Source: Convolutriloba macropyga (taxonomy: Eukaryota). Taken from it: a DNA stretch of 64,000 bases. A program made the position numbers and the translations under genes. The DNA lies in the NCBI RefSeq assembly GCF_964194025.1, contig NC_134482.1:16492001-16556000 (forward strand). The letters run 5' to 3'. The notes beneath the pieces are model-generated. The model had not been told where the DNA came from. It saw only the letters and a list, made by a program, of their open reading frames with translations, and made no database searches. Position 1 is the stretch's first letter. Each line of letters begins with the position of its first letter. This document shows positions 14,100-63,999 of the stretch, piece after piece.

Positions 14100-17000
14100 G
14101 ACTTAACATTGAAATTCCTCATACATCCAACTCCAATAGTGACCCATGGGGTCAATGCGCTCTGCAGGTCACAGATGATGGACATGGAGCTCTACAATTT
14201 CATAGGTGTGACTTCTGGTTCCAGCTATAATGTACTTCTGTTCCTGCAGCCCTGATAACTCTGGGTTTGGCTTTGTGAGTCTTGCGAAAGTCCAGCTAAA
14301 GAAACATTCTTCATGTCTTCTCCCAATGTTGACAAAATCCAGAAACTTGGTGAAAGCGCTGACAAGTTGAAGAATAATTTCGTGTTCGTTAACGAAATTA
14401 AACGTGAATTGACGGAGATAAAGTCCTTGGTCATTTTTGTTTTTAACAGAGATCAACAACATCAAAGCTAAATTGTCGGAAGCCAATTTTAGTTCACCAG
14501 CAGAGCCTGCAGTGGTACCAAAAATTCTCGGAAACTCCTTTTTCGACCGCTTCAGAGAAGTATAAGGTATCAACGAACAAGATCCAACGTTGAAGTCTTC
14601 AGAAAGACTAAAAAAGACCATTCTACAGCACAAAATCTGATTGAGAAATGAGATCCGTCCATTTACTCAATCGAAGACGTCCACCAAACTGGCGTGCCGA
14701 TCATGAACCCGGACCAGTTGTTGTAATTTTCCAAAGTCAATGGGACAAACGGATAGACTGTCGAATTCTTATATGCTGAAGAAAACCAAGTTCTTCCAGA
14801 AACCAATGTTAACTCCGCAAAAACAAGCCCTGGAGAAACAAATGCTCAATTTGTGATTCAATCTATCAAATATATGCATCTACAAACAAGAGCTGTGAAT
14901 TTTGAGTTTAAAACTTTGTCATGGGAATACAATTTTGGATCATTCCAAAGTCCCAGATGTTCTAGCAAAGCAAATTAAAGTCACCTGAATACGCAATTAC
15001 TTTTTTGTAAATAAATTGATTGTTTCCCTCTTCTGAACTCTGGAGTATTGCTATCGCTAGAAAAATGACCTGAATTCGCAGCCCTCCTACATAAACACCA
15101 ACCACAACTGGATTTTCTCATCCGGAAATCCTTAGGTACGACGCTTGAAAGCTTGACTTTTCACCTGGGGATCGTTTTCAGTTATTGGAGATGAAGACCG
15201 CATACAAGGTCCACACAGCGGGACTCTGATTTTGCAGAACATCTCCAATACAACATTTGCGAAATCCTATGGCAATCCTGTCATAAGCAACGTTGACGTT
15301 GACATTAATTCTTCAGCTCTCATCAAAGTTGACGATCGTATCGCCCTCTTCAGTTTGGTCTACATGCCCCCACAAGGTAGTCCTTATGGATTCAGAACTA
15401 CATCCTTGGCTAGCGTTCTACATTTTGGCTTGACATTTCTGAGTTTTAATGACAATATTGCATTTGAACACCGCCATATGTGCCATCTTCGTGATTTTAA
15501 CATTCCGAAAACTGATTGGTCGACATTCAGTTATTCATATGCGAGAGAAACTAACTTTTTAAACATCTTAGATGACTATGAACTGTGCCCTTTTATTTTC
15601 GGTTACGCACACAGCTGTGGCAATTTCCTCGACAACCTTCCCGTTCTCTCATCTATCACCGGTTGTTTTGACTGTCTCGTGCTCTCACTCACTCCTTTCT
15701 CAGATAATGCTCTCATATCAGCAAAAATATACACAAAAATCCTTGCCCTCCTCTATAAGAATTCGAACTTATGCGTTTACTGAACCAGACAATTTTACTT
15801 TTTGCTCACTATGGCAAACTTACACCTGCTTCAATTATTTTTCTGCGAACACGGTCGCCGATTGCTACCACCATCTGCGTAACAGTTATTTTGGAGAGTA
15901 ACAAGAAAAAGGACGTCCGTGCCAATCTACTACTCATTCCATACTGTGCATACTTTGAAAAAACAGGCAATTAGCGTTAAAAAGTGTCATTCTGGTAATG
16001 ATGTTGAGCGTAACTTTGAGGACAACCTTGAAAAATCTGTGGAATTGGACAAAATGCTCTACGTATCTGGGAAGATCATATCCAACCTGGATTCTTGCTT
16101 CAAAAAAAAAGTTTCATGGAAAAAAGTCTTCTCCATCCACTGTTCAATGCTTTCGGTACATCGAAATTTGGTTCATGGATTTACGTTGCAAATGTTTTCA
16201 ATGATTTTTTTTGCTTTGAATTGCAATACGAACTCATACGGAACAAGGATACCAGATAATAGCCAAAATCCTATCTTCCTCAATGACTTCTGCGGCTTAT
16301 CTAGCGACTCTGATATTCTTCAAGTTATTCTAAACAGCATTGCTTGCACTTATGAGAACCATCATGACTTCCCGAATTGTCTTTTGAAGAAATGCTCTGG
16401 TCTTTTTGCAACGTTGTTGCGGACCGTCTTCAATTCCATAATTCTGGACTGCCAACTGCCCGAAATAGGAAAACCTTCATTTATTAAACCTATTCACCAA
16501 GACGCTTGCCGGAAAAAGATCACCAATTTCCGTCCAATTAGTCTGCAGCCAAAAATCTCATTGATATTGGAAAAGTTAATCCAAAAAATTCTTATTGATA
16601 TACTCAAAAATAAAATTTATCAGAGGCAGTATGGTTTCCAGTCAAAGAGATCGACAATTTTTACAGCTCTTTGAATACGCCAGCTACCTATATCTCAACA
16701 AGGGAGACATACTCTTCTAGATATACTTCAATTACGGCAAAGCCTTCGATCAAGTCCCACATTACGTTTTACTAGTGAAACTCGGAAAAATTGGCCAGGG
16801 CTCGAATTTTGTTTCCCTCCTTGAAAGTTACTCCCTCGGAAGATTTTAAGCAGTACGGATCAACGTATTTTCTTCGATGCACATAACAGTTTTGACCCAG
16901 TTATAACAGTGGCGAACCTCATAGTACAGTACTTAGGCCCGTTTTTCTCAATTTTTATCAAAAACTTGCCGTGTATTCTTATGGACGGTATTATGTGGTT

Positions 17001-17860
17001 ATTTGCTGATGACTCAAAACTAGTATTCAACTGCTTGTATATCAATGACACCCTTCTATGTTTTTGCAATTGCAATCAAGCAAACGAGATGTTATTCAAC
17101 GCAAAAAAGTGCTTTCGTGTTTCTTTGGGAACTGTCCAGCCAATTTTAGAGTAAGCCGACATCACAATTTCTCAACAAGAGTGAGCGAAAGATCGCTGAG
17201 TTTTTGTCAACAAAAAGGTAAGATGGAACACGCACACTCAGTTTAAAGTCACCAAAAGCCGCAGAGGTTTCTACAAGCATAAGATTACTATCCCTCGGAG
17301 CACTCCATCACATATCAAGTACAGGACCTAAGTCGCCTATCTTGTTCCAATGTTCCTCTCTGGTTCGCAAATCTGTTGCTTGTCCGTTTCAGACGTCAGT
17401 GTTTTCAAGAATATCCAGGAAAATGAGAAATTAGATGGACTTACGTGGGTTCTAGAAACTACTTGGTCGCTCTTATCACACACAAATTTCTACCGATGGC
17501 TTCTAGAATCCAAGTTGAGGACTGCCGACTGTTCAGTCTCTTCGCCCTAAAAAACTTTTGAGCGACTTCCGTAATAGTGTTGAAGTTGATCTCTTAGTGT
17601 GACGAGAAGACAGAGAAACAAGTTCAAACTCGAACGCAAAGTAGCCTTTACGAACAGTCCATCAATGTGCTCAATTTTTTTTATCGTCATGGGATAATTG
17701 ATTATTCAAACTTCAAGATCAACAGTATTGTTCAACACTTTGATTCTATCGATCCATATTCTACTCTCTGTTTTTGATGTTCATGGATTGCTGGTTGCAT
17801 TTGCACCACGTGTACGAGCTTTGTGAATGTTAAATAGGAGAAATGAATTTCATTGATTTT
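14100..17860 (+). mobile_element. Degenerate CR1/L2-group LINE (possible ORF1 remnant, APE and RT)
   Basis: APE: VYMPP, DFNIPKTDW, GNFLD, SDN. RT: IKPIHQ..NFRPISL, QYGFQSKRST, KAFDQVPH, LGPFFSIFI, LFADDSKL. C-terminal CICTTC. Many stops and frameshifts; 5' limit approximate. Confidence 0.8.
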
Positions 17861-28804: not shown

Positions 28805-29306
28805 CCTGTGTTGAGAACTTCGTTGAGTTCAAACATAAGACATTGTCGGTTTTAGTTGGCTTTACTAATCCAAAACCACTCAAAACCCTCAAATTTTTTT
28901 CGTCGTTTTGATCGGTTCTGGTCGGTATTAAAACATAAGAAGCGTTGGTTTTTTCCGTTTTAAAGTCTTACAAAACGGACAGTCTTTGTCTGGATCCGAA
29001 CCTACAAAACAAGATTCATTACCACCTTTTTCTCTATTGCACCACCTCTCGCTTATTTTTCCTTCTTCTTTTGTATTTAAATCAAATTAAAACTGACGAT
29101 ACTGACAAAACACGACTATCATCGACACTTCTTACATAAAATACCAACAAAAAATTGCGCTAATCGACACTTCATAAATTAAATACCGACAATACCAACA
29201 AAATGACCATAATCGACAGTTCCTAAATGCAAAGCCGATGAAATCAACAAACTTCGACAAAAAATGACGCTTCTTGCGCCGATTGCATCGCAGTTTCTCA
29301 GCACGG
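28805..29306. mobile_element. MITE/foldback-like element (duplicated at about 34494-34995)
   Basis: Imperfect TIR cctgtgttgagaac / agtttctcagcacggg; inward-facing gtcgg / ccgac short-repeat arrays. Confidence 0.55.
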
Positions 29307-32300: not shown

Positions 32301-32325
32301 TCTTTCTTCTTTTGACCTGTCTCGT

Positions 32326-32476
32326 CTATTTGAGTTTTTTGATGAGTCTGAGTCTGATGTATGTGATGAGTAGAGACCCCACCATGATGCAAGTGAGACC
32401 CACTTGATTCTGCCAGTAGTCCCAATCTGTGCCGAACTTGATTCCTGCATCCACAAGATAGTCCTCCCCACTCTTC
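32326..32476 (-). other. Duplicated copy of the ABCG2-like terminal coding exon
   Basis: Identical to 38022-38172, including the TTTTAG acceptor and stop codon. Confidence 0.85.
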
Positions 32477-32500
32477 CTAAAAGAAATTTTCCTAAACGTT

Positions 32501-35500: not shown

Positions 35501-38202
35501 CAAATGCTTGATGTTTTTTTAGGGTGACCTTTTTATTCAATCTTGGTTATTTTCCTCTGTGGGCAATAAATGTTATCAGAATTAAAGTGGGCAAAGGCAA
35601 AATTATGTAATTATGTATGATGAATGAAAACTATTATGTATAAGAAGTTGAAATAATTAGGAAAAATCCGAGTTTACTCACAGATCATTAGAGTGAATGG
35701 GTTCAAGTCAAGGTCCTAACTCAACGGCTTTAATAGAAAAAATTTGTTAGATGATGCTTGAAAATTGTCAAGTTGTCCACAATAGTTTTCGATTATCCTA
35801 CATCAAATATACAATTACAAGCTTAGATAACACAAAAATTTTGCTTTTCAAATTGTTTCCTTGCCTTATGGTTTTCCGTATTCAAGGATTGATCATAATT
35901 CCAATGTTTCTACTGTAGAAAACCTTCGCAAAGCTTCAATTTTACGTCAATTCATCTAAATTTACAGCTTTCGAAATGTGTTTTTTGCAAAACCAGGTCC
36001 TGCTTTTGATCTGCTTCAAAAAAACTCACATGTGAGGCTAAACTATCTTGTTACCCGCATATTAACGAAATAGTGAAAACCAATCGAAATAGACCAGTAC
36101 TTCGTTTGTGTATTTAAATGTAGATCTTGTTTTTCTGGCGTTTCCAAACCCACATTGTACATAATTCTAGCGTTTAATAGGTGGATCTTGCAAGTTATTT
36201 GCGTTTATAGTCATACATCTTGAACAGTTTAAGTATTTGTAGTTTACTTAAATAGTAGTTTTTGCGAGCAGATTATATTTAAATTTGGCGTCTTTAGGCG
36301 TAGGTCATGGATGATGTTGGGGTTTCCAAGCGTTCATCATACATAGTTCTCATGATTTTAAGCGTTTCTGCAGCACAGCTCTACTGCTGTAGCGCAGTGA
36401 AACTTTTTTCTAATTTGGTGCTATTATGACATCATTAGAACCCACCATTCATGTTTTCTCGCTTTATACTCATATTTTTGATTTAAACTTCATTTTTAAT
36501 TTAAACTTCATGAATTGATACATCCCCTAAAAGTTATTAAGGCAAAATCCTAACGCTTTGTCATGGAAAATTACGCCAAGCGCGCTCCATTTTAAAAAAA
36601 ATAACTCAGACAAAATTATGTGATATCAGAAAACCGGCACACAAATAAATTGCTTCAGATTATTCGAATTCTTCAAAATTTAAGGCTCTTGAAATGCTTT
36701 TTTTGCAAAACCAAGGCGGGGTTTTTATCTATATAAAAAAATAAATTTGACAATTTGACAATAAAATTTCTTGTTATATAGATCTTGTAACCCGCATACT
36801 ATCGAAAAAAATAAAAAACGATAGCAATAAATTTGTACTTCTTTTGCGTAATTAACTGTGGATGTAATTTAGCGTTGACGTTTCTAAACTTAGATCTTAC
36901 ATAACTTTTAAAAAATTTTTAAAGCCTACGTCTTTCAAAATTTTTGAGTTTCTCACTATGGATCTTAAACAGTTTGAGATTTTGAAGCCTAAGTCTTACA
37001 CAAATTGCCATTTATGAGAATATGCTTCCATAAGTTTGGTGTTTGAAGGCGTAGATCTTACGCAATAGAGGCGTTTCTACGCGTTCCTCTAGCACTTATT
37101 CTGTCTCTGATACACTACCCAGCACTGACCTAGTGGATGACTGTCACCTCTTCTCCCACCGTACCACCCAAACCGACTTTTCCTAAGAATATGTGCTTCG
37201 TAAATTGGAATTCAAAATCTCAAATTCTTACGCGTTGGTGAGTCCGTCAAATCAGTTGATTTGAGTTGGTTTGCGAAAATATAAACTCAATTTCTTCACC
37301 AACGCCTCCATCATGGCACCAACCCAAACCCTCTTACCGCCGATTCCTGCTTTTTCTTGCTTTCTATTTTCTTAAGCATATTTTGAGGTCAAAAATTCAC
37401 CTTCTAATATTGTATCGTAAGTGTATCTTTAAAAATTAAAAAAATTAGAAACGATGCAAAAAAATAACGCTTAGTTATGCAGGATGAACTATAAGAGACA
37501 CTGAATCGTAAAAAATATTAAAATATGCCAAATTATGCCAAGAATATGAATAAATTAAGGTAATTCAAAAATTAAACAGTTGGTTATGAAAGATCAACTA
37601 TAAGAAAGACAAAATTAGTTAAGATCGATGCAAAAATAAGCCAAGCGCAATGCACCTTCAAAAACGGGTTATGTCGGTTAAAGGAAGAGAAAGGTTTATG
37701 ATATTTGAATCCCTGCCCAAGAACCGTTTCAGACAATTTTAATTCTTCAAAATTTTAAAGTTTTTAAAATTTTGTTCCAGAATACCAGGACTACCTGTTG
37801 ATTAATTTCGAATTTGAGCTATGCAAAGCAAATGACTACTATTAAACAATCAAAACGCTTAGTTGTACAATATTGACGAAGAAACATAATTCAAGACCCT
37901 ACAATCCGCTTTCATATATCTCGAAACTAAAATGTTGACTAAAAATTGAATATTCATATCTAAGTGTCAAGAAAGAAATTGTACGTCCTTCTGTTTTCTT
38001 TCTTCTTTTGACCTGTCTCGTCTATTTGAGTTTTTTGATGAGTCTGAGTCTGATGTATGTGATGAGTAGAGACCCCACCATGATGCAAGTGAGACCCACT
38101 TGATTCTGCCAGTAGTCCCAATCTGTGCCGAACTTGATTCCTGCATCCACAAGATAGTCCTCCCCACTCTTCCTAAAAGAAATTTTCCTAAACGTTATTT
38201 CG
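32501..38202. repeat. Tandem segmental duplication, copy 2
   Basis: Differs from copy 1 by about 6 substitutions and +4/+3-nt indels (counted by eye). Confidence 0.97.
38022..38172 (-). CDS. ABCG2: ABCG2-like half transporter, terminal exon (join 51784-51660, 47071-46917, 46510-46421, 43889-43822, 38172-38022)
   Basis: KSGEDYLVDAGIKFGTDWDYWQNQVGLTCIMVGSLLITYIRLRLIKKLK* parallels the ABCG2 end GEEYL..QGI...W.NHVAL.CM...AYLKL..LKK. Acceptor TTTTAG|G (phase 2). Confidence 0.85.
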
Positions 38203-48312: not shown

Positions 48313-51300
48313 TCAAATTTGGATAGAATAACAACAATTGAAAATTGGAGTTCCCCAAATTTTGGTATATGAATTGTAGAAGCCTCAATAATAAACATGA
48401 GCAATTGTCTCGTTTTTTGAAAAATCTTAATGAAACCTCATTACTAGTTGTTACCGAAACATGGATAAACGAAATAACTGACATTCCCGAGTTTTATCTG
48501 TGCAATAGCCATCACTTCATTCACCAACCAAGATCATCTTTAACTAATGTACAGAGAGGTGGAGGGGTAGGTATTTGGGTTCCCAAACAGTTTGAAGCAA
48601 AAATGAGAAATGATTTGAACACAATCAATAGAAGTTTTTTTGAGTCAAGGTGGATTGAAATTGGTAAGCCTTTAACACAAAAACTACTCATTAATGTAGC
48701 ATACTGCCCCAATGTAAATCTTTCTAACTTTTTTCTGGATGAAATGACTGTAGAAATCTCAAATGTATATTCGTATACAGATAATCTCATTTTATTAGGA
48801 GATTACAATATAAACTTGTTAGGCACAAAAGGTAGACAGTCACTTGATATTTTCACAGCAAACAATGGGCTATGTTACGTTAATGAAACGGAGGCAACAT
48901 GGACAAATGGTGAAAAATATTCGTTAATTGATCACTGCTTTATCTCGAAGAACCAAATTTTTGAAGCCAGTGTTCTAGAGTCGACTCTTGGAGTTGATCA
49001 CTTCACAATAGTATATCAGTCATCATTAAAAATAGATCACAGTGATAAGAAAAGACAGTTTTTGATACGTTATACCAAGAAATATTCAAGATCAAATTTT
49101 AATCGTGACATTGCGCTGCAAGATTGGTCGCCTATGCACCAGATAAATGAGCCGAACGAAATGTTTTTAAAAGTTATTGAAGTTTTTGAAAGTATACTGA
49201 GTTGTCATGAACCCTTGAAGTTGGTAGACAGTAGTACCAAAAAACAACAAAAGCAATGGTTGACAAAAGAATTACGTGGTCTCATAAATGAAAAACACCG
49301 TCTCTTTAATGCGTGGAAGAAAAACCCAAAATCAGAGATTTATAACATTTACAAATCTTTACGCAATTCGGTGAGTAGAAAACTGAAAAAAGCTGCAGAT
49401 GATTACACAAAGACTTTTTTCCAGCAGCTACCAACTTCAGGAGAACAATGTAAATTCATCAAAAACAGGATCAATTCCAACAGCCAAATAGAAAAAATTG
49501 ACAATTTAAAGGAAAATAGTCATTTTGTTGAGGATGACAGAGAGACTATCAATGTTCTTAATAATTGTTTTGCGAGACTAGGATTATACAAAGGCAAAGA
49601 CGTTGCTCCAAATTGTTCTTCCCTAACATTTGATGGACCGGAATTTAGCTTCCGACCAGTCACCAGAAAAGAATTGTATAATGTTATTGATAATCTACCT
49701 AAGCATAAATCTCCCGGACCGGGCTATGTACCAGCATGGGCGCTAAAAGATAGTAAACTGTCTATTGGAACTCATTTACAATTTGTCGTCAAGGAATGTA
49801 TAAACAAAAACACGTTTCCTTATATTTTGAAAACAGCGCATGTTACACCTGTCTATAAGAAGTGAGATCGACTAGAGCCAGAAAACTATCGACCCATATC
49901 AGTCACACCAACTCTAGCAAAAATTTTTGAGCGAATACTACTTGAACAACTAACTCACCATCTAACTCTTAATGGTCTGATTAACAAGAATCAATTCGGC
50001 TTTCAAAAGCAAAAGTCCTGTCTCGATACTATCATTTCATTAACTGAAAAGATAAACCAATGCGTTGACGAAAGGAAACTGTTGTCACACTCTTTTTAGA
50101 CTTAGCAAAGGCTTTCAACTCAATATCTATAGATGTTTTTATGAACAAAATGAAAAGGTATGGAATTGGAGAAATTGCAAGAATCTTATTAAACTCTTTC
50201 CTTTGTGACAGAAAACAGTTTGTAAAAAATCGGATAGCAAAATCAGATTGGGTTGTCATAAATCACGGTGTTCCTCAGGGAACTGCCTTAGGGCCTCTAA
50301 TTTTTATACTTTATGTCAACGATTTCAGTGAAGCTGTATCAACGAATTGTGATGTATTACAGTTTGCCGATGATACAGCAATTCTATGTCATGCACAGAA
50401 TGAAGCAATTTTACAGTTAATAGCTGAAGATACATTCAACAAGACAGATCAATATATGAAACAAAACAGGTTAACTTTGAATGAGAAAAAAACGGAGTTA
50501 ATGGTGTTCAGGAATGAAAAATTGCCGATCATTGAAACTGTCGATTTCAAGGGACACCGATTGGAAACATCTGAAAAATGTAGATATTTAGGTGTAATAA
50601 TTGATAGGGAACTGACATACCAAAATCAACTAAATAAGGTTATCAGTAAAATGGCTTCAGCAATCAGATCATTATATTTGGTTCGTTATCAGGTACCGCT
50701 AAAAACAAGAATAAATCTTTTTAAATCACTAGTTTTGTCTCATTTAGATTTTAGCGCAATTTTTTTTCAAAATTTACCATCTTACTCTATTGACAGAATT
50801 AACAAACACATAAACTGGGGGAAAAAAGTTTGCTTTATGAAAACCAAATACGATACTGCCAGAGATCTACTTCTGGAGACTAAAATTCTTCCAGCAGAGC
50901 TCCAAATAACACGGGTGTCTTTAAATAGATTTTTCAATATTCTCCAACAAACAAGAAATCGCTCTAATAAACATTTCAGATTTTTAGAAAACGTGTCTAT
51001 TATTGTAAACAAACGAACCCATAACCTTTTCTTAGAACAAAAATGTAAGTCAAAATGGAGTAATGGTTCAATTGTTCGTAACTTTATTCGAAAATGGAAC
51101 ACACTTCCAATTACAATTAGAAAAGAAACGTCGAAGACCAAATTTAAACAAAAAGTTACAGCGGAAATGCTTAAACGACACGAAAGAGTTCCAATAGACA
51201 GAAGTGGTGCAGGATTTAAACATATTTTTTATTAGATTATTTTACGAAAACCGAACCTTAGTTTGTTATAAATTAGAAAAAAATAATGTTTGATTAATAA

Positions 51301-52434: not shown

Positions 52435-53730
52435 TGTATTACCAACCAGAATATACGCAACTACTTGGCAAGCCAAAATATTGTTGATTCAAGAGGGTGA
52501 TAAAACCCACTTTGCATTGAAATTGAAGCCACAGATCCAGAATTTGAACTTTTGTTCCGTTGGTTTGTTTATCAATCCGAGCAGTGATATGATAGCATCT
52601 GGAACCTTACTATGGGGACCAGAAAACTGTCGTAGAGTTTTCGTCGACGGATCTCTTTTTTCAAGCTACGGCTCACATTAAGCTCTTCTTGCTTAAATCA
52701 AGATCGTGACCGGATTTATGGGTAAACTTCTGTAATAATCACATTCGTTTATAAAAAATATCATTCGAAAAACGGAAAAATTGTTCCTAAATAAAACATT
52801 GTTATATGTTATTTTGACTTAAATCAGGGAATCACTGCTAGAGAGCGTTAATGGACACAATCATTTCGCTTCACTAGACAAAAGTCATCCTCAGACTCTA
52901 TCAAATTTGGCTGGGCTGCTACAGATCACACAATACGAGATCTCTTTATGTATGCCAGTCAAACTTGACAAAAGATATAACAAATCGAAGGCAAAGATAT
53001 ATCCCTAAGACCTGTCTGTGCTATAAGTCTCAATTTAAAACTGTTGGGGGGCTGAAAAGTTCAATTAATTAAATAGATAGTTTAAATAAACAAGCTTACA
53101 CTGAGTAGTATTTAACCGGGTTGAGCTGTTACTTGATTGTGTTGTTGTTAAGTGAGTGCGTCGTTGAAACTTCTTCAAGTCGGGTTCTGTTTGAAAGTTA
53201 GAAAATGTTCTTCTAAGTAAGAAGTCTTTTATATAATTTCTTCTCTGTTTGAATTTTGAAATTTAGTTTGTAGGAAAAATGAAGCAGTTGTCTGCTGCTG
53301 GTCGTTGGCTCTGTTATTTGTCTCTTTAATTTTATTCCGTCCCACTTCGCTGAGAGAAACAATTAATTCCTCTCAGCTCCGTTTGGGCCGTTAGGGAGCG
53401 AATCACAAACTCACGTTCATAGTGCAGCTGTCATATTGCAACTGTCAAAAGCAGAAGTAATTTAAATCAAAAGAAACTGTGGTTTTACAGGCCGCCTACG
53501 TTCAACAACGTACATTTTCTGTCCTGGATATAAGCGTGGAGATCCAGGCCTAAAGTTGTGTCATTTAAATAAGTCGAACTGAGTTGTTTAAATACTTGTG
53601 TACTGGTAGTCTTAATAAGCGTTAGTTTGTTTAGCGCGCGGCGAAAGAATGGTTAATTAGCGCCTAAATACGTTCGCTCTAATGCGGGATTAATTATCCG
53701 TTCATTTGTAACGGCTCTCGTAATAATACA
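52435..53730 (-). repeat. Putative 3' LTR (~1.3 kb)
   Basis: On minus strand, starts TGTATTA right after purine-rich AAAATCGGGGTGAGC and ends TAATACA (7-bp terminal inverted repeat), followed by ATAT(C). TATATAAAAG at about 53226-53235. The 5' LTR is not in the window, so the distal end is inferred. Confidence 0.6.
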
Positions 53731-53921: not shown

Positions 53922-55096
53922 TTAGTTAAAAAATTCTGGAGGCAAAATGACTGGGCTTGGCATCGGACTGTTACCATCGTCTTCGATCAAAAGAACCTCT
54001 TGTATATCGTCCTCAGTTGGTTCGTCCTTATCCATTGACTGTCGCTTTTTGTGCTTTTTAACCCTCCTTTTGAGCTCGGAAATTTTGGTTTTTTGTTCAT
54101 CGTTTTCCTTCATTAATTGTGTTATTTTCTTTCCTAGCTCCAGATTCTTTTCTCCAAGTTTTTTGTTGGCGTTTGTTATTTCTAGATGTTTCAAGGAGAA
54201 CGTTTTAGCAAAGTTTGCGCGTTTGATTTGCTGGTTTTTTGGAGTTGATGGGCAACGACATATTGGCGCCGCCAATAGTCGTTAGGTAGTTGCTTCTCCT
54301 CAGGTGGTTTCTGTGATTCCATTTTAAGTTGTTCAAATTTCAGTTGCAATTCTTGCAACTCTGTTTCCTTTTGAAATTGTTCCTGCCTGAATGTGGTGTT
54401 TTCCTCTATTAAACTATTGGTGTTGATATTTGATAGTTCTGGCATCTCGACAGGAAAAGCGGAAATGGCATCGTAGGGGACTTCAATATATGCGTCGAGC
54501 ATGTTATTCCTAAGGGTATAAATGCCCTTCTTAGGGTCGCGATTTTTGATTCTCCATTTGTTGTTTTCTGCGGGAAGCGAGAAGGTTTTCAGAACTGGAA
54601 GCTTTTCGCTGTTGACTAGTATCTGTTGATGTCTATTTGACTGGATGATGTTTATTTTATTAGCAACCTCAAATTTGTTGTAGTTTGGTTTCAGGAAATA
54701 GAGGAGGGTGTTAACGTATCTCGGGTTTTCTTTATTCATGTTCTTCTCTCGCGGTTTCTGCAATTTCAAACATTCTGAGGGTATTTTCCTGATAGCGTCG
54801 GGAACGAGATCTTCAATGTTGTTCATCTTAATAATTTTGTTTTTGTGATTGCTAATTTGTTGGGTTGGGAATTGTCTCTTTCTGCTAACTTGCCAGTTGT
54901 TTTCGGGATCATATTGACTGGAAGTTGATGGAGATGCAACAGTTGTAGTAACTTGTTGTGTGTTCTGAGGTTTAAATGGAGGCTTTGTGAAAATAGGAGG
55001 CTGAGAAGAATGGGTTTGTGTTTGTTCTTGTTGTGTTGTCACTTGTTGATGTTGACTGGGGATTACTACGCTTGCGAGTGTGGGTCTGGTAGTCAT
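53922..55096 (-). pseudogene. Accessory protein (~390 aa if one frameshift near 54200 is repaired): Q/T/P-rich N-terminus, coiled coil, basic NLS-like patch, acidic tail
   Basis: Overlapping ORFs 54191-55096 and 53922-54275; LELGKKITQLMKENDEQKTKISELKRRVKKHKKR; EDDIQEVLLIEDD. Confidence 0.55.
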
Positions 55097-55500: not shown

Positions 55501-55785
55501 AACCTTGCTGAATTGAAAGAAAGAAATTTTCCGGGTCATTCTTGGAATTTTCAGTTATCGTGTTAGTGTTCTGAATTATTTAGGTTCAAAAGCCAGGGGG
55601 GCAGGCTGGAGAAAGCTGAGGTAACCCCTTCCCGAGGAAAAGTTAAGAGAGAGAGAGAGAGAGAGAAAAAGATCGTTTGTACTTGAGTTGTTTTTGATTT
55701 ATTAGACAACGTCGTCTAAAAAAATTTTTTGCAAATGGGACATCTTGTCAGCTTATTTATGCACACCCGACAGAATCGGTGTTTG

Positions 55786-56097
55786 TCATGTTGGGAAAAA
55801 TGTGGGTGTTTTGTTACTCCTAATTCTGTTTTCATTTTTTTTGCATAAATTGCAATGAAAGTAGGATGTGATCAGGACGCGAAGACAAGCTCGAAGACAA
55901 ATGGGACATTTAGGGTTTGGGTATCTTTTAAAAAGTGCCTTTCTGCAAGGAATACATACATAGTGAGGATTTTCTCTGGGAAATTGCTTATGTAGTTTTT
56001 CTACAGTAACGGTTTTTCGTGAACATATGGGGCAGATAATGTCCGTATGGGGGTAGAACCAACGGAAACCGTCGAATAGGGATTGTGAAAGACCCAT
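55786..56097 (-). CDS. Accessory RING-like zinc-finger protein C (103 aa, MGxxxS myristoylation motif)
   Basis: CPIC-KLH-PHYVCIPC-PKCPIC-FHCNLC; paralogous to 56556 and 57157 ORFs. Confidence 0.75.
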   Translation of the reverse strand: MGLSQSLFDGFRWFYPHTDIICPICSRKTVTVEKLHKQFPRENPHYVCIPCRKALFKRYPNPKCPICLRACLRVLITSYFHCNLCKKNENRIRSNKTPTFFPT

Positions 56098-56246: not shown

Positions 56247-56363
56247 TCACTGTCTGGAGAAAATTTGGCGAATTGTGGAAAGGAGGTAGTGATTAATAAA
56301 AAGGGATATTGCCAATGCGCATAAGAGAACAAATAGAAGAATAAACAATGTTATGGGTTGCAT
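56247..56363 (-). CDS. 38-aa single-TM micropeptide
   Basis: MQPITLFILLFVLLCALAISLFINHYLLSTIRQIFSRQ*; shares LAIS.+IN..LL with 56122-56244; AAAATG start 4 nt after the previous stop. Confidence 0.55.
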   Translation of the reverse strand: MQPITLFILLFVLLCALAISLFINHYLLSTIRQIFSRQ

Positions 56364-56367
56364 TTTG

Positions 56368-56505
56368 TCAATTCAATGAGTAGTGTAGAACTAGGGTGAA
56401 GGAGGTGACTTGCTTCTGGTAAAAACTGAGTTGAATTAGGGATATCGATTGGATTAAAAATAAAACTAGGGAAAGAAGTAAAATTTTGGATGTTCTTGGA
56501 CGCAT
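56368..56505 (-). CDS. 45-aa hydrophobic micropeptide
   Basis: MRPRTSKILLLSLVLFLIQSISLIQLSFYQKQVTSFTLVLHYSLN*; AAAATG context. Confidence 0.45.
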   Translation of the reverse strand: MRPRTSKILLLSLVLFLIQSISLIQLSFYQKQVTSFTLVLHYSLN

Positions 56506-56555
56506 TTTAGGTTATGTGATTGTTTTTTTGCAACGAGGGCATAATTTATAATCTT

Positions 56556-56888
56556 CTACGCAAAATTTACAAAAGTTGACGGGCTCATGATCACTGTGAT
56601 GAAACGTTTTTGCAACAGAATATTGAAATCTTGTTTCTTGCAAATATCACATTGAAACCAGTTAAAGATTGAAAAGATAACTCTAAATTTAGAGCATTTA
56701 GGACAAAAATCATAGCCCATATCTTTTATAACATATTGGTAACAGAGCAGACACATTACGTGGGGTAGTTCGTTAGGGGCGTTCTCGTGTAATTTCTTGA
56801 AAACAATTGTTTCACGTCTGCAGCATAAACCAATTAATGAGACCGGTTTGGATTCTATAGTATTGGTTTCTTTGTCAATTGTATTCAT
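56556..56888 (-). CDS. Accessory RING-like zinc-finger protein B (110 aa)
   Basis: GLCC-KKLH-PHVMCLLC-CPKC-FQCDIC, same spacing as paralogs. Confidence 0.72.
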   Translation of the reverse strand: MNTIDKETNTIESKPVSLIGLCCRRETIVFKKLHENAPNELPHVMCLLCYQYVIKDMGYDFCPKCSKFRVIFSIFNWFQCDICKKQDFNILLQKRFITVIMSPSTFVNFA

Positions 56889-56914: not shown

Positions 56915-57163
56915 TTATGGGACTGGCACGGTTGGAGGATTTGGTTGTCGATTATTTTGGGATTTTATTGTTTGGTCTATTACTAATATAATTATGAACA
57001 TCAAAAAGTTGAAAGGAATACTTACAACTACGAGGAAAACGGTTAAAACGAAGGAGAAGGCTGCTGCAATAATCATAAGGGCCATTAATAAAAAATCAAG
57101 TAATCTGGGGGTACACATTTTGGATAGTTTGTGAACGTAGTTTTGAATTGAGGATTTTACCAC
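56915..57163 (-). CDS. Small membrane protein (82 aa, long hydrophobic segment)
   Basis: LLDFLLMALMIIAAAFSFVLTVFLVVVSIPFNFLMFIIILVI; start overlaps the previous stop (ATGGTAA). Confidence 0.6.
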   Translation of the reverse strand: MVKSSIQNYVHKLSKMCTPRLLDFLLMALMIIAAAFSFVLTVFLVVVSIPFNFLMFIIILVIDQTIKSQNNRQPNPPTVPVP

Positions 57164-57555
57164 GGGTTGTTTGGGTCAATTGTTTGTTTGCATAAAGGGC
57201 ATTTAGTAGTTGTGAAAATCATACACTGCAAACAAACTGATTTTTTTGGGTGTAGGCTTTTGAAGTGGCTGTGGCAAGTGCATAACTTTTTGATTTCTTG
57301 ACAAGAATCACACTGGAAATAATGGCAATGACTGATTGTATAAATGGGAGTTACGCAAATGGGGCATTTAGGTTGGTTCCAATATTTAAATAATTCATTT
57401 CTACAAGGAATGCAAGCAAAAGGGGGGGTTTGACCGTTTGGGTTTTTGTGCAATTTTTTAAATTGACGACAAGGGAGGTAACAAATAGGACATTCGATTT
57501 TTGGGGTTGAGTCAATTTGTGGTTGCTGAGATAATATTTCCAAAATGTTTCCCAT
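57157..57555 (-). CDS. Accessory RING-like zinc-finger protein A (132 aa, extra C-terminal Cys cluster)
   Basis: CPIC-KKLH-CIPC-PKCPIC-FQCDSC, then CTCH..H..CLQC..CPLC. Start overlaps the previous stop (TAATG). Confidence 0.75.
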   Translation of the reverse strand: MGNILEILSQQPQIDSTPKIECPICYLPCRQFKKLHKNPNGQTPPFACIPCRNELFKYWNQPKCPICVTPIYTISHCHYFQCDSCQEIKKLCTCHSHFKSLHPKKSVCLQCMIFTTTKCPLCKQTIDPNNPW

Positions 57556-57821
57556 TATATGGATAAATCAGAGAGATCTGGGTATGCGACTCCTAATCCA
57601 TGGTGTTCAAGTTCGTTGGGGATAGTTACATTTAGATCTGCGATAGCAAAAAAGAAATTCCAGTGTTTCTCGTTTGGATAGATGTAATAATGATTAATGC
57701 TACCTGTGCTTAGGAACATAAAAGTTATTTTGATACATGCTTTATATTGTATAAAACAGATAGTAAACCATCTTTCTGCTTTAACAATTTTAACTTTTTC
57801 CTTACCAATGAACAAAATCAT
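57555..57821 (-). CDS. Accessory family A protein (88 aa)
   Basis: MILFIG..VKIVKAERWF...P..KHWNFFFAI...IPNEL family signature. Confidence 0.65.
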   Translation of the reverse strand: MILFIGKEKVKIVKAERWFTICFIQYKACIKITFMFLSTGSINHYYIYPNEKHWNFFFAIADLNVTIPNELEHHGLGVAYPDLSDLSI

Positions 57822-57944
57822 TTTATTTTTAACAATTTGGAATGAATTGAGGGAAAAGGGACAAATTGATTAGAAAAAAAAGAAATAATGAGCAGGGAAA
57901 AAAATTATTTTTTTCGGAGAGAAAGTTATGTGAAACAAATTACT

Positions 57945-58175
57945 TTACTGAAGAGCGCCCAAGTTGACTGGGAAGTGCTCTTCGATATCAATGAGTGCAA
58001 GAAAGAATTCCCAGTGCATCATTCCCATGGTGACTCGAGTAGAACCCTCACATCCACGCTCGTAGTCTGTATAGTGTATAATTATACAGGGTTTAATCTC
58101 TGCTGTGGGAGTTTTAATGAAAGATCTCTCGAGGGACTCTACTTTGACTAGGCGCTCACCAAAGTGGAACAGCAT
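57945..58175 (-). CDS. Accessory family A protein (76 aa)
   Basis: MLFHFGERLVKVESLERSF...PCIIIHY...HWEFFLAL...FPVNL; TAATG overlap with the previous ORF. Confidence 0.68.
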   Translation of the reverse strand: MLFHFGERLVKVESLERSFIKTPTAEIKPCIIIHYTDYERGCEGSTRVTMGMMHWEFFLALIDIEEHFPVNLGALQ

Positions 58176-58408
58176 TATAGAAGATCTAAATTAAAAGGGA
58201 TTTTAGAACCATTTAAAGCTTGGGATATATTTATAAAGAATGTCCAATAGGGGGAAGATGGTGTTAGGGTAATGGTTTCATCAGTCCAAGTGTTTAAATA
58301 TTCAAAATGGAGTATTAGTTGTGGGATTACTCTGTTGCTTTTTGTCGTGACAAATGATTTTTCAAAAAATTGTACTTGTTTAAGGCAGTTTTGGTATGAG
58401 AATATCAT
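58175..58408 (-). CDS. Accessory family A protein (77 aa)
   Basis: MIFSYQ...EKSF...PQLILHFEYLNTW.DETITLTP.S.YWTFF...IPFNLD. Confidence 0.68.
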   Translation of the reverse strand: MIFSYQNCLKQVQFFEKSFVTTKSNRVIPQLILHFEYLNTWTDETITLTPSSPYWTFFINISQALNGSKIPFNLDLL

Positions 58409-58416
58409 TGCTGCTT

Positions 58417-58701
58417 TTAATTGTGAATAGTTTCCAACTCTTTAAGGATTGAATCGTTTTGGCTAGAATCAGTCTTTTGCATATCAAAATAAATATTGTG
58501 AGGTACACAGTTTGGATTTTCTAGAATAAATAGGAAGAATTTCCAATGAACTGAGAGAGGATTAATACTTATTAAACAAATTTTTTCACTTTAGATTTCT
58601 TTGAGCGTTACTAGCATAGTAGGTACAGGAGTTGGCTATGCATCAAAAGATCGTTGAATTTTTTGTAACTCTACAAATTTATTGTTAACTGCAAATATCA
58701 T
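58417..58701 (-). pseudogene. Accessory family A paralog with two in-frame stops
   Basis: MIFAVNNKFVELQKIQRSFDA*PTPVPTMLVTLKEI*SEKICLISINPLSVHWKFFLFILENPNCVPHNI. Confidence 0.6.
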
Positions 58702-58957
58702 AGTTTAGAATGATACCTAAGCAATGTAGATTGGATGTTGTACTTGAAATACCAAGTTCTCTTTGAATGCTAGAAAAATGGTAAATTCGGCGAACTGAGG
58801 ATGAGTAATGAAAATAGTTAAAAGTCTGTAAATATTTGTCATGGGTTTTTTTTGCGAAAGTCATTATATTTATAGCGGAAACATAGTATACGGCTAATAG
58901 CTCAAAATTTTGGTTTCCGATTCTGATTTGTAAGTTTCTATTAGTTAAATGAATCAT
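58685..58957 (-). CDS. Accessory protein (90 aa), weak similarity to 59491-59775
   Basis: ATG ORF overlapping both neighbours by 17 nt; L.IR.G...++L...+SA+ shared with the 59491 ORF. Confidence 0.5.
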   Translation of the reverse strand: MIHLTNRNLQIRIGNQNFELLAVYYVSAINIMTFAKKTHDKYLQTFNYFHYSSSVRRIYHFSSIQRELGISSTTSNLHCLGIILNYDICS

Positions 58958-59183
58958 GTTGCTGATCTAGCTCTTTTGGCAAACTATTAGGGTCGAATTG
59001 TGCTAAATACACGAATTAATTCCAACACAACGAATGAGGGGTTAAAATCACAGTATCGTTTTCCCAAGTGTCTCAAAACTCAAAATTTATAACAATTTGA
59101 GGGAAAATGTCTCCGTGTTGTTCTTCAAAGGTTTTCTTTATTTGATAAATTGTAACAAGTCTATCTTGAAACAAAAAGTACAT
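58941..59183 (-). pseudogene. Accessory family A paralog with two in-frame stops
   Basis: MYFLFQDRLVTIYQIKKTF...PQIVINFEF*DTWENDTVILTPHSLCWN*F..LAQ...LPKELD, clearly colinear with 58175-58408. Confidence 0.65.
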
Positions 59184-59490: not shown

Positions 59491-59775
59491 TCAAAATCTA
59501 GTAATATTTTTCTTCAGGTGCTTTGAAACAATTTCGTATTCGATTCCAATGTTTACAAAAGTAATTGTGTTATCAATCAGGGCTCCTAACAATGAGAAGT
59601 TTTGAAAATTTGAATGTGGTACATCCAGATCAATGATGTCACTGAAGTAGAAAGATGCAACTCTAATAGTTACAGTAGTTTTCAAGGCGGAAATACTTGA
59701 TGATAATATTTGTCCGGTGTATTGTCCAAATCGAATGAATAAAGCGTTAGGCTGTTTTATGAATTTGGGCTGCAT
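59491..59775 (-). CDS. Accessory protein (94 aa), first ORF after env
   Basis: ATG-initiated, co-oriented ORF; function unknown. Confidence 0.5.
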   Translation of the reverse strand: MQPKFIKQPNALFIRFGQYTGQILSSSISALKTTVTIRVASFYFSDIIDLDVPHSNFQNFSLLGALIDNTITFVNIGIEYEIVSKHLKKNITRF

Positions 59776-59902: not shown

Positions 59903-62337
59903 TTAAGGAGGTGTCACCACACTTCGAATTATTGCATCATTTTGTGGTTGTGGTTGATGTGACGCCAGACTTGGGTATTCTGCTTTATTATTTTCTGTAT
60001 GACAATGCTCATCAATTTTATTTTCTCTTGGTTGATCCTCAACGCATTTGTAAGTTTTTTCTATTGTGCTGTAAGGTTGATAATTACTAAGCGGTAAAAA
60101 GTGATTGTTGTTCTGTGGGGCCGACGGTTTGGTTTCGTTAGAGAATACCGGTGTAAAGAACGATAAGATACAAAGATTATATGTTGCTCCTAATAGAATT
60201 TTCCAAAAACCCATTGTTTTGTTGGATATTTTGTGGATTTCGAACGCTCTTATGATTGTTACGATTACATCAGTTAAGAATTTTATGCAAAAGAAACAAG
60301 CAAAATAAACTCCAATTTTTTCCAGATAAAAAGTGATGATTCCAAAAGTGCCTTTGAACTGGTCTGTAAAAAATGTAGGTGAAAGAAGAGAATCTAGATA
60401 AATTTGTCTGTTAATTCCCATTACTGACGCATAGATATCTTTTTGAGAATTTGTCTATGCTTCTTCCTTCTAGAACTTCTCTTGAAATTTTTGTCAAAAC
60501 AGATTTTGAAGCTTCCGAATGCAAGATATTGTCCCAAAACGATTTAAGCTGATTTGGTGTGTAAATTCCGGCACGTTGCGATTCGTAACCGGTAAATTTT
60601 GGAATAGAACTAATAACTCTTGAAGAGAATATGTTTGGCGGTTGTAAAGGAACAGGTGCTGGCATCAAATGGTACTATGAGTTTTCATTATCAATATCTA
60701 ATTGGTAGGCATTTTTATAGCCTCCAACACAATCTACTTCGTTTGCAGATGGGCAGGTTTGTCGAGTAATTGGGTCGACGAACATTGTCCTACCATCATA
60801 ATGAATAGGAATTCTATCATAACACTGCTCAAGAACCTGAAGTGGTGAGTTTGGGTTTGGACAGTGGTACAGCCAACCTATGCTACCATCTGTGTCTAAG
60901 AACATCGAGCGGTTGCCGGTTAACATATATCCAGCTAAACGATTGTTTTGGATAGCCTGCATTAGTATCATTTGTTTTTGAGTTCGGTCAAGTTCGCATT
61001 GTTCTATGACCAAACCTTTCCATGCTTGTTTTTTTTGTTTGCATGTAACTATGATATATGACAAAATCCATTTTTACCGCAAGATTAAGATCATAGTCTA
61101 ACTTCTCTTTGTCTAAGTGTTCCCATGCAACAAAACCTTTGTCGAATGTTCGGATCTGTTCATCTGAAGGCTTCCTATTAAACCCATTTACACTTAGGCT
61201 ATTGTCAGGTTCAACACGAAGTTTATGAAAAAATTGTTGAGTTTTTTGTTTTATAAGGTTTGCCAGTCTTCATATTAAATCCGCCTTTATAAGAAACATA
61301 TAAAGAATCTAAATTTGTTCTGTAAATAAATTCTGGTTTTCCACACACCTTTTCTTTTTCATCAATTACTCTAATTTTTATGTCCATTTCAGCAGGAGAA
61401 TACGCTCCTGGTCCTTCATAGGGCGTCTCCGGTTTTTCATTACTCACTATGAAATACTGTACGTTACCAAGTTCGTTTTCATGTTTTAGCATTTTGGCGT
61501 TTTGTGAAAATCTTTTAGTAACTATACAATTTTCCGGTGCTTCCCAATTGTATGCAAAGGGGTCGAGTGATGTCGAATGACAACCTCCTTCTGAGAGGGC
61601 ACAAGGAAGTTTTAGTCCTTGACTGTTATAGACAGTTCTGTCATTAAGATCAATATCGAGTACAGTTTCTTGCATCAGGGTTTCAAAAGAGAAAAAGAGA
61701 AGTGTTTAATTTGACCACGATTATCACAAGATGTTGATGAATCACCTTCAAGATCAACTCCCTGGTTTTTATAGGAGACAGTTTTTTTTCCATGTTTTAT
61801 GTCAATTTCCATGTCATCATCGTCAAATTCGGTAACAGTAATTTTTCCAGTTTTATTAGCATTTAGGCATTTTTCGGGTGAAACAATAATATCGTATGTT
61901 ATTATTGGAGCGTTGTGTACAATTGATGAATGGGAAAACATACCACAATTATAACGAATGAGCATTGCAGTGACTTTGCACATAAGAGCTTTAACAAAGT
62001 TCCGATAAGACCGTTGATAAAGTGTTACATGTGTATCAACCATCTGAATGTTTTCGGGTGAATTTTTGCAAGGAGAAACTTGTGTTAAAGCATACATTTT
62101 ATTTTCTTTCATTTTAGAACAGTCATAATGAATGACCCTAAGTTTGTTAGATACGTCATTAATATCCTCAAAAGGAGGTCCAGTGGCGTTAATAACTATA
62201 GGAAGAGTACAAAAGTAGAAAAGACTTATAAGTAAATAAGAAAAATAGAGTTTTTCAAAACAAGGATATCTGTTCATCCTGTTCTTTTTTAGCGCTTCAA
62301 GTCGGGAATTAAGGCTATGAGTTGTAGTAATAGGCAC
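59903..62337 (-). pseudogene. env: Envelope glycoprotein, chuvirus-like / class III fusion type, split by frameshifts and one stop
   Basis: Signal-like YFSYLLISLFYFCTLPIVINA. Motifs HYDC, CKV..YNCGMFSH, LDYDLNLAVKMDFV, AGY..LYHC..CYDRIPIHY..FVDPITRQ..EVDC and GIYT..QL. C-terminal TM segments. Confidence 0.75.
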
Positions 62338-62967: not shown

Positions 62968-63999
62968 TTAGTTTTTTTCTACTGTATAAGGTCCTGATCT
63001 TATTTCATGTAGTTTTTTTGACTTTCCTAACTCAATTTGATGGTTTTCCATTAGAACTTTTTGTCCAACCTCAAGTGGCTTGCCTAATTTGTGTTTGTTT
63101 CTATGTTTATGTGCGCGGTTATTGTTTTCTAAGCTCTTTTTATAAGCGTTATTGTATATTTGTTTGAATTGGTTTTCTTGCATAAGCAACGAATTGTTAA
63201 TAGTCGGTTTTAGAAGTTTGTCAATTTCGGTGTTTTTTGAAGTTAGCAAGGTATGCCTGTGAAGAGGCAGGTCTTTGCAAAACTCGGAAGAGCATGTGAG
63301 TTGTGAATTTCGTAGGAGTCCTAACTTAAGTGACAGAGGTATCTGTGGTTTTTGTCCGAACACAATTTCATAAGGTGAGATTCCAGTACTAGCATTTGGA
63401 ACCGTGTTATGAGAAAAAGCAAATTTTGGTGCCAGTTCATCCCATTTACCTCGAGCTTGTTCTAGAAAAATTCGGAAATGTGCTCCTAGATGTTTGTTTT
63501 GGATCTCAACTTTACCATTAGTCCAAGGCGCATAAGCAGTTCGAGGTGCGGGTCTTATACCTAAATCATGAATGTAACTCGCAAAATCTTGGTTCATGAA
63601 TGCCGAACCCTTATCATAAACAAGTTTTTGTGGTATTCCAGAAGACAAGATGAACTTTTCTAAAGCTTTTATGGTGTGTACTGCGACTGTGGAACGTACA
63701 GGGTATACTTGAATCAAACGCGAAAATGAATCGACAATAACTAAACAATGGTGTTTACCAATCGATGGAGGATTTAAAGGTCCTTTGTGATCAATATGGA
63801 CCGTATGAAAGGGGAATGGGACTGTATCATTCCAATTTTCGAGAGGTGCTTCGTGGATTTCTCTCCGTTTTTTTTCATTTTTTTTGCATTCCAGGCAATC
63901 AGCAATTAGGTTTTCAATCCATTTATACATTCCGGGCCAATAGAAAAATCGTTTTACATTAGCAAGTGTTTTATCTAAACCTACATGATCTGACAGTTC
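62968..63999 (-). CDS. pol: Ty3/Gypsy integrase (3' end of pol; open off the right edge)
   Basis: H.GLDKT..FYWPGM..CLEC zinc domain; HIDHKGP, VYDKGSAF-x35-E (NGKVE) DDE triad; GPY motif (RSGPYTV). Confidence 0.95.
   Translation of the reverse strand, partial: ELSDHVGLDKTLANVKRFFYWPGMYKWIENLIADCLECKKNEKKRREIHEAPLENWNDTVPFPFHTVHIDHKGPLNPPSIGKHHCLVIVDSFSRLIQVYPVRSTVAVHTIKALEKFILSSGIPQKLVYDKGSAFMNQDFASYIHDLGIRPAPRTAYAPWTNGKVEIQNKHLGAHFRIFLEQARGKWDELAPKFAFSHNTVPNASTGISPYEIVFGQKPQIPLSLKLGLLRNSQLTCSSEFCKDLPLHRHTLLTSKNTEIDKLLKPTINNSLLMQENQFKQIYNNAYKKSLENNNRAHKHRNKHKLGKPLEVGQKVLMENHQIELGKSKKLHEIRSGPYTVEKN

Follow-up and report, generated by a model that had tools for sequence, protein, structure and literature searches.

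What kind of genome carries a row of five short, mutually related open reading frames (ORFs) that match no known domain, and what could such a row be for? The question is raised by a 64,000-nucleotide stretch of DNA from Convolutriloba macropyga (RefSeq assembly GCF_964194025.1, contig NC_134482.1, positions 16,492,001 to 16,556,000), which is free of N stretches and is called, in its entirety, the window. The original prediction, made from the letters alone, had noticed three open and two stop-interrupted reading frames in it, read them as a tandemly amplified family of proteins of about 80 residues with an (H/Y)W.FF signature, and proposed a gene accordion of small effectors as seen in host-virus arms races. 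We refer to these five paralogues, all on the minus strand, as A to E and give their coordinates as window positions (Table 1). They are very probably conserved accessory genes of a giant (~19-22 kb), env-carrying Ty3/gypsy-type long terminal repeat (LTR) retroelement, and form a new protein family.

A tandem family of five small proteins

All ten pairwise Smith-Waterman comparisons among A to E scored above 1000 shuffled controls (z = 3.5-19.7); no shuffle reached the observed score in eight of the ten pairs, and for the weakest pair, A-C, 13 of 1000 did so. A hidden Markov model (HMM) built from A, B and C alone picked up the orthologues of D and E in other copies of the element, with E-values of 1e-3 to 4e-16. 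When a profile of 32 family members was scanned against the six frames of the whole window it recovered exactly A to E, everything else scoring no better than E 0.008, with a shuffled control at 0.07. The five-member tandem duplicate family is thus real, and its alignment significant against shuffled sequences. The motifs first noticed also hold up: the alignment of the 32 members is almost gap-free, with M1 invariant and F19, W55, F58 and P69 conserved in at least 90% of them, and this with paralogues that are mutually only 20-28% identical, so that the description of strong divergence with length and motifs retained was apt. The borderline match at E 0.008 (17075..16863, minus strand; 13.6 bits over 29 residues) lies far outside the element and is probably due to chance.

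The stops in D and E are real, but they do not mark these genes as degenerate members of the family: they reflect the decay of a single insertion, in which env is also frameshifted. We compared natural copies of the element, designated by locus numbers (L001 and so on), writing an X at each break in a broken gene. Intact versions of E occur in L005, L006 and L003, and of D in L005 and L002, with all five genes intact in L005. The positions of the stops vary from one copy to another, which points to decay after insertion; the window copy is a decaying insertion, and comparison by tblastn with the intact 782-aa env of L005 places at least four frameshifts in its env (near 61690, 61240, 61030 and 60450). 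An alternative genetic code as the explanation of the stops was ruled out, as each of the three stop codons is represented in D and E taken together, and other copies have both genes intact.

Table 1. Genes of the array, its carrier element and the accessory region in the window
Feature	Position	Strand	Size	State and remarks
pol, integrase part (rve core)	63930..62968	minus		Pfam PF00665, E 2.5e-12; blastn to other copies
env	62277..59906	minus		Monjiviricetes-type class III fusion glycoprotein; Pfam PF24664, E 8e-16 and 7e-11
Gene G	59775..59491	minus	94 aa	Intact; first ORF after env; conserved in all three element lineages
Paralogue E	59183..58941	minus	80 codons	In-frame stops at codon 37 (59075..59073) and codon 56 (59018..59016)
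Gene F	58957..58720	minus	79 aa	Separate conserved ORF between E and D; frameshifted near 58851-58844
Paralogue D	58701..58417	minus	94 codons	In-frame stops at codon 22 (58638..58636) and codon 37 (58593..58591)
Paralogue C	58408..58175	minus	77 aa	Intact
Paralogue B	58175..57945	minus	76 aa	Intact; query for structure prediction
Paralogue A	57821..57555	minus	88 aa	Intact; fifth member, apparently lineage-specific, long branch
RING-like double zinc-finger ORF 1 (RING1)	57555..57157	minus	132 aa	Starts MG...; pN/pS 0.23
Small strongly hydrophobic ORF	57163..56915	minus		Probably transmembrane
RING-like paralogue 2	56888..56512	minus		Split into two ORFs in the window
Small strongly hydrophobic ORF	56505..56368	minus		Probably transmembrane
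Small strongly hydrophobic ORF	56363..56247	minus		Probably transmembrane
RING-like paralogue 3	56097..55716	minus		Split into two ORFs in the window
Q/P/T-rich ORF	55096..54191	minus	301 aa	377 aa in L005; 290-377 aa elsewhere
3' LTR	53730..52899	minus		Begins TGTAG... right after a purine-rich tract; marks element end

The carrier is a retrovirus-like LTR element

A to E lie between an env gene and the 3' LTR of an element that extends past the right end of the window, which holds its 3' LTR only. Both LTRs are present on contig ctg35970 (5' LTR at L004:5507-6524, 3' LTR at L001:17353-18453) and are 92-96% identical. The span between them is ~22 kb, a length explained by an internal duplication, in which ~2.4 kb of the 3' accessory region, including part of the LTR, occurs twice (L001:12825-17651). 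A circular contig of 18.8 kb with twice the coverage of the others fits a collapsed element. Pfam domains occur in the order PEG10_N-capsid, gag-asp_proteas, RVT_1, RT_RNaseH, Integrase_H2C2 and rve in L005, L009, L010 and L012. The complete succession of gag, protease (PR), reverse transcriptase (RT), RNase H, integrase (IN) and env is found in L005 and L010, and in L005 pol (973 aa), env and all the accessory ORFs are open. The order env-G-E-F-D-C-B-A-RING...LTR is the same in six copies of the window's lineage, hereafter lineage 1 (the window, L001, L002, L003, L005 and L006). The carrier hence displays the features of env-carrying Ty3/gypsy elements for which it was tested, namely two LTRs, the gag-pol order and an env after pol, with A to E inside every copy.

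A word search with C returned only five proteins, 75-95% identical to it, all from the ENA assembly ERZ25071359 and all encoded on contigs that represent further copies of the element. In the same assembly a contig of 241,755 nt holds exact matches to G and RING1 of the window. G and RING1 are each surrounded by a cluster of near-identical proteins, of 72 and 117 members, respectively, with single variants on up to 27 contigs, and this multitude of near-identical versions indicates that the element is abundant and was recently active. The carrier is an endogenous retrovirus-like element residing in a marine animal genome, and A to E are not a cluster of host genes, nor part of any other host or DNA-virus locus. 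The original guess of a virus-like setting was therefore sound, but it had missed that the carrier is a retrovirus-like LTR element. A search of the whole window against Rfam gave nothing at the gathering threshold.

Selection on the array and its age

The ratio of nonsynonymous to synonymous polymorphism (pN/pS) among the six lineage-1 copies is 0.37 for A to E concatenated (bootstrap 95% confidence interval 0.29-0.45), while the two remaining frames give 0.95 and 0.85; this measure is an estimate and not a formal test, but the contrast between the frames is nevertheless clear. By this measure env has a value of 0.42 and pol one of 0.27, and gene-wide values range from 0.22 to 0.46. Given this difference between the coding frame and the others, A to E appear to be genuine genes under purifying selection, in line with the selection that the original prediction had proposed. 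The start and the length of the ORFs are also kept in lineages with env proteins 57-64% identical. No evidence of positive selection was seen in the gene-wide pN/pS of the six copies; between lineages, divergence is saturated.

Relatives found by a word search with the intact L005 env form a graded series. L008, from the same assembly ERZ25071359, has an env 64% identical to that of L005 and four members of the A to E family, all open. L010/L011, from Tara Oceans plankton metagenomes (PRJEB4352), have an env 57% identical, four members and a homologue of F between E and D. L012 (ERZ25074608) and L009 (NCBI GCA_013332775.1), with env proteins 46% and 43% identical to that of L005, have no member of the family and share only homologues of the 301-aa ORF. 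The family thus appears, from this distribution, to be an innovation of one element subclade.

The two sister lineages hold positional orthologues of E, D, C and B, and in a maximum-likelihood tree each of these four types clusters by position across lineages with moderate support (77-90%), A being placed on a long branch beside the B types. The sharing of four positional groups between lineages argues that four paralogues were in place before the lineages split and that each has been kept; E, D, C and B accordingly go back to tandem duplication long ago, in an ancestor shared by at least three lineages of the element, with their order retained since. By the same comparison A looks like an extra copy added only in the window's lineage. 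Orthologues are 36-56% identical between lineages, compared with 57-64% for env and 70% for pol, and the family thus seems to evolve faster than either.

This history bears directly on the gene accordion. A true accordion would involve fast expansion and contraction of the array in an arms race with the host, its members being redundant effectors against one host factor. A few observations are in keeping with this: there are five copies here, four in L008 and four in L010, A sits on a long branch, the orthologues diverge faster than env and pol, and two more families are amplified in the element (RING-like proteins with 1-3 copies, and leader ORFs before gag with 2-3). However, the recent, near-identical tandem copies expected of an accordion are seen nowhere, the paralogues being merely 20-28% identical to one another (17-28% in comparison with B). 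Nor does copy number vary among close relatives, as the same five genes are present in 6/6 lineage-1 copies; the sole difference, five versus four, separates lineages with env proteins 57-64% identical. Four positional orthologue groups persist across ~40% divergence in env, and selection among the copies is purifying. The idea was thus correct in so far as copy number does differ between lineages, but the array is old and nearly stable at four to five copies, and we consider a true accordion improbable.

Packing of the genes and separateness of the products

The genes of the array are packed tightly. Spacers within the run from E to B measure -4 to +12 nt in L010, whereas they range from -17 to +45 nt in L008 and from -17 to +15 nt in L005; in the window the stop of C overlaps the start of B, and that of A the start of RING1, each as TAATG. 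Nearly all starts have an A at position -3, and no shared splice-acceptor motif is visible upstream of them. Such packing leaves no non-coding room for separate promoters, which suggests joint expression from one RNA, and the accessory genes would in this sense form an operon-like block.

Tight packing also invites the idea that A to E are repeated domains of one larger protein, joined by splicing, stop-codon readthrough or frameshifting. The tiny spacers and the overlapping stops and starts would suit it, as would the arrangement in L005, where D and C are in the same frame with only a stop codon and a 9-nt spacer between them, and the fused C-B ORFs of 156 and 162 aa in other lineages. Yet methionine occupies the first residue of the predicted fold (see below) in 32/32 aligned members, and each member reaches a stop soon after the fold ends. 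Moreover, neighbouring genes are in different frames, and relative frames and spacers vary between lineages and copies; even the D-C spacer, 9 nt in L005, is 8 nt in the window. One larger protein is therefore quite improbable, and we favor the reading that each ORF encodes a separate, soluble and mostly acidic protein of ~76 aa, as the sequences indicate.

Relatives and predicted fold of the proteins

The proteins have no recognizable relatives among described families. None of the 32 members matches Pfam at E 0.05 or better, and a search of PDB sequences with the family profile found no match, the best E-values being 0.25 and 1.7. A profile search of 1.84 billion representative proteins gave 41 matches at E <=0.001, all of 49-162 aa and with E-values down to 1e-39; the 29 of these that were inspected all show the motif pattern of the family. 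Two of the matches, P0170 and P0173 (156 and 162 aa), are fused C-B pairs from two other lineages. As for the contigs of two matches, one is another contig of ERZ25071359, and the other a contig of 586 nt in a further ENA sample. With B alone as the query nothing was found in the JGI metagenomes, and only a chance match of 11 residues (L007) in IMG/VR.

AlphaFold2, given B with the family alignment, produced a model with a mean local confidence (pLDDT) of 84.5 and a predicted template modelling score (pTM) of 0.69. In it, strands span residues 2-5, 8-21, 27-37 and 43-49; a helix (55-67) starts at the invariant tryptophan, and a short helix follows at 72-75. Each protein is thus predicted to consist of four antiparallel beta-strands followed by an amphipathic helix that carries the (H/Y)W.FF motif; in the model this motif probably contributes to the hydrophobic core. 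Hydrophobic residues occupy most of the conserved positions, which probably belong to the core as well. Most members are acidic or neutral (isoelectric point, pI, 4.2-6.9), they are not rich in cysteine, and inspection by eye found no signal peptide or transmembrane segment in them.

Foldseek searches of PDB and BFVD with this model returned no match with E <0.01, the template modelling scores (TM) being ~0.5 or lower. The COMM domain (best E 0.25, TM 0.35), the Pur-alpha repeat (E 0.4, TM 0.31), PC4 (E 0.5, TM 0.26) and the N-domain of EF-P/eIF5A appear as weak look-alikes, none of which passes. The first three are like A to E in size and in the order of secondary-structure elements, and the COMMD proteins, too, are a paralogous set that forms one hetero-oligomer (8p0w and 8f2r are among the weak matches). 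However, with E-values of 0.25 or worse, TM scores of 0.19-0.36 and no sequence similarity, membership in these folds, for which a significant E-value and a TM of ~0.5 or more would be expected, is not supported. With Pfam, PDB sequences, Foldseek and the large profile search all yielding no known relative, the original impression of an unfamiliar domain is upheld.

The resemblance nevertheless raises the possibility that A to E are single-stranded nucleic acid-binding modules of the PUR/Whirly/PC4 kind, which would chaperone or package the RNA or DNA of the element. Four strands followed by a helix is the order seen in both the PUR repeat and PC4, and Pur-alpha from Borrelia and PC4 are among the weak Foldseek matches. 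Against this, those matches are not significant (E 0.4-0.5, probability 0.2-0.3, TM 0.26-0.31), most members are acidic or neutral, as the pI range above indicates, and the conserved residues are hydrophobic, being neither basic nor surface aromatics. Nucleic acid binding by A to E is hence unlikely, and a chaperone or packaging role of this particular type very improbable. That the five are chance ORFs or non-coding repeat remains in a long 3' region, with no protein product, can practically be dismissed: an AT-rich region does yield many short ORFs, Pfam matches are lacking and translation is inferred from sequence, but a pN/pS of 0.37 in frame versus ~0.9 off frame, 36-56% amino-acid identity across lineages with lengths kept, a confident AlphaFold2 model and profile E-values down to 1e-39 all speak for proteins.

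A possible joint function

Four non-redundant paralogues have been retained, their core is conserved, and their surfaces are variable and not basic, which makes protein-binding modules the most likely kind of function. As a tentative scheme, which as a whole we regard as possible rather than probable, A to E might all be produced from a single RNA, subgenomic or polycistronic, through termination-reinitiation, or else through trans- or alternative splicing with acceptors embedded in the upstream ORF. They would then constitute a co-expressed set of small protein-binding modules, acting as a hetero-oligomer or as a panel of adaptors, each with its own partner. Their role could lie in particle assembly or egress of the element, or in countering control by the host. 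A bolder version is somewhat more doubtful still: four to five polycistronically translated paralogues of an unseen fold, lying in an operon-like block of a dozen accessory genes in a clade of endogenous retroviruses of marine animals, would build one hetero-oligomeric machine needed for the spread of the element. If true, it would mean a new level of genome complexity in Ty3/gypsy elements together with a new family of protein folds.

Several points weigh against the account of A to E as separate, selected and jointly expressed accessory proteins. The values of pN/pS are taken from six copies that are not independent. The tree, computed from 82 columns, lacks any branch with strong support. 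Larger spacers also exist, with 123-135 nt between B and A and ~300 nt between G and E in the window's lineage. C and B are fused into one ORF in two other lineages (P0170 and P0173), so that strict separateness of the proteins is not required. That each ORF is translated is inferred, as is the way in which the genes are expressed, and the hetero-oligomer or adaptor idea rests on the retention of paralogues and the packing of the genes.

Comparison with known elements

LTR retroelements are usually described as consisting of gag and pol, sometimes with env. Across metazoans, Ty3/gypsy elements are known whose env encodes a class III glycoprotein like that of chuviruses (Chuviridae) or herpesvirus gB (eLife 2026 RP108449 = PMC13524379; Dezordi et al. 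2020, PMC7642597). Like these errantivirus-like elements, the present one has LTRs, a PEG10/Ty3-type gag capsid, PR-RT-RNaseH-IN, a Monjiviricetes-related env after pol and many genomic copies. Both descriptions deal with gag, pol and env; PMC13524379, in the text searched, touches only briefly on extra ORFs. A literature search for accessory ORFs in such elements brought nothing relevant to light, and no description of a large accessory block with internal gene families was found. In contrast to those elements, this one reaches ~20 kb, with a block of ~6 kb and at least ten further ORFs between env and the 3' LTR, and with small ORFs before gag.

Complex retroviruses, such as lentiviruses, spumaviruses and epsilonretroviruses, carry extra accessory ORFs. 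An accessory-gene region is also reported for lokiretroviruses (PMC7947760), and such a region of complex retroviruses would be the closest functional analogy to the array. In both cases the genes are found between or after env, ahead of the 3' LTR, and encode small, rapidly evolving proteins that are restricted to particular lineages and lack cellular homologues. In contrast to complex retroviruses, the array comprises four to five diverged paralogues of one fold in tandem with near-zero spacers, and no similarity of sequence or fold to retroviral accessory proteins was found. Large DNA viruses have multigene families and gene accordions, examples being the amplification of K3L in poxviruses and the multigene (MGF) families of African swine fever virus (ASFV). 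Here too tandem paralogues of small proteins, presumed to be host-directed, occur in a virus-like genome; however, A to E differ in having a retroelement as carrier and in being ancient paralogues each of which is kept, with neither recent amplification nor polymorphism in copy number observed in the six copies.

The element possesses a long, packed accessory region with three internally duplicated families, i.e. A to E, the Met-Gly RING-like proteins and the ORFs before gag. This complexity is near or above that of complex vertebrate retroviruses, in an invertebrate-type element whose env was captured from a lineage of negative-strand RNA viruses. With no detectable relatives beyond the 41 like proteins, a confident predicted fold and purifying selection, A to E are a candidate for a previously undescribed domain, and offer access to the expression of such elements and to their dealings with the host. 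At least seven ORFs follow one another with next to no spacing, which also raises the question of how such a block is translated in a eukaryotic host.

Other genes of the element and its surroundings

Directly downstream of A to E is a second amplified family, comprising three RING-like paralogues of ~125-132 aa with invariant Cys/His columns (L005:10866-12693), of which sister lineages hold one or two copies. Two of the three start with Met-Gly, which may be a myristoylation signal, and RING2 starts with MN. Their Pfam matches are weak (arenavirus Z-type zf-P11 and C3HC4 RING, E ~0.02-0.05). Besides the small strongly hydrophobic ORFs listed in Table 1, a hydrophobic ORF of 105 aa lies between G and E in L008 (L008:12685-13002) and looks multi-pass. 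Gene F is intact in L005 (L005:9452-9691), L006 and L010 (L010:11127-11366), is 44% identical between lineages and in L005 overlaps the end of E by 17 nt. The AlphaFold2 model of G failed (pLDDT 34). No relation of G, F or the leader ORFs before gag to A to E could be demonstrated by hhalign (P 0.4-0.8).

A third internal family occupies the leader between the 5' LTR and gag, with two to three related ORFs of ~75-85 aa and one of 124 aa (L010:504-1633, L003:9790-10939, L004:7824-8588 and L008:8547-8834); the two groups of leader ORFs are related to each other (hhalign P 7e-8). A tandem-repeat stretch is also present in the leader (L004:6748-7425). Homologues of the 301-aa ORF are found at L005:13302-14435, L008:15296-16177, L009:9882-12095 (where it is duplicated) and L012:12651-13466, and a motif resembling NPR(Y/F)V..LKYSLKP, judged by eye, is common to this ORF and to ORFs of distant elements that lack A to E. 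On this distribution it seems to be the oldest of the accessory genes.

Just outside the LTR element is a non-LTR retrotransposon (48345-51235, plus strand) with two ORFs, one for an APE-type endonuclease (506 aa) and one for a reverse transcriptase (364 aa), and further reverse transcriptase fragments lie at 15919-16674 and 20733-21089. A segment of 5.69 kb occurs twice in tandem at 26812-37422 with 99-100% identity, and contains repeats spaced at ~440 nt. The only clear host gene seen in the window is represented by an exon of an HDAC1/2-type histone deacetylase (7988..7473, minus strand), uninterrupted over 171 codons; its alignment with human HDAC2 covers 160 aa at 330 bits, which speaks for an animal host.

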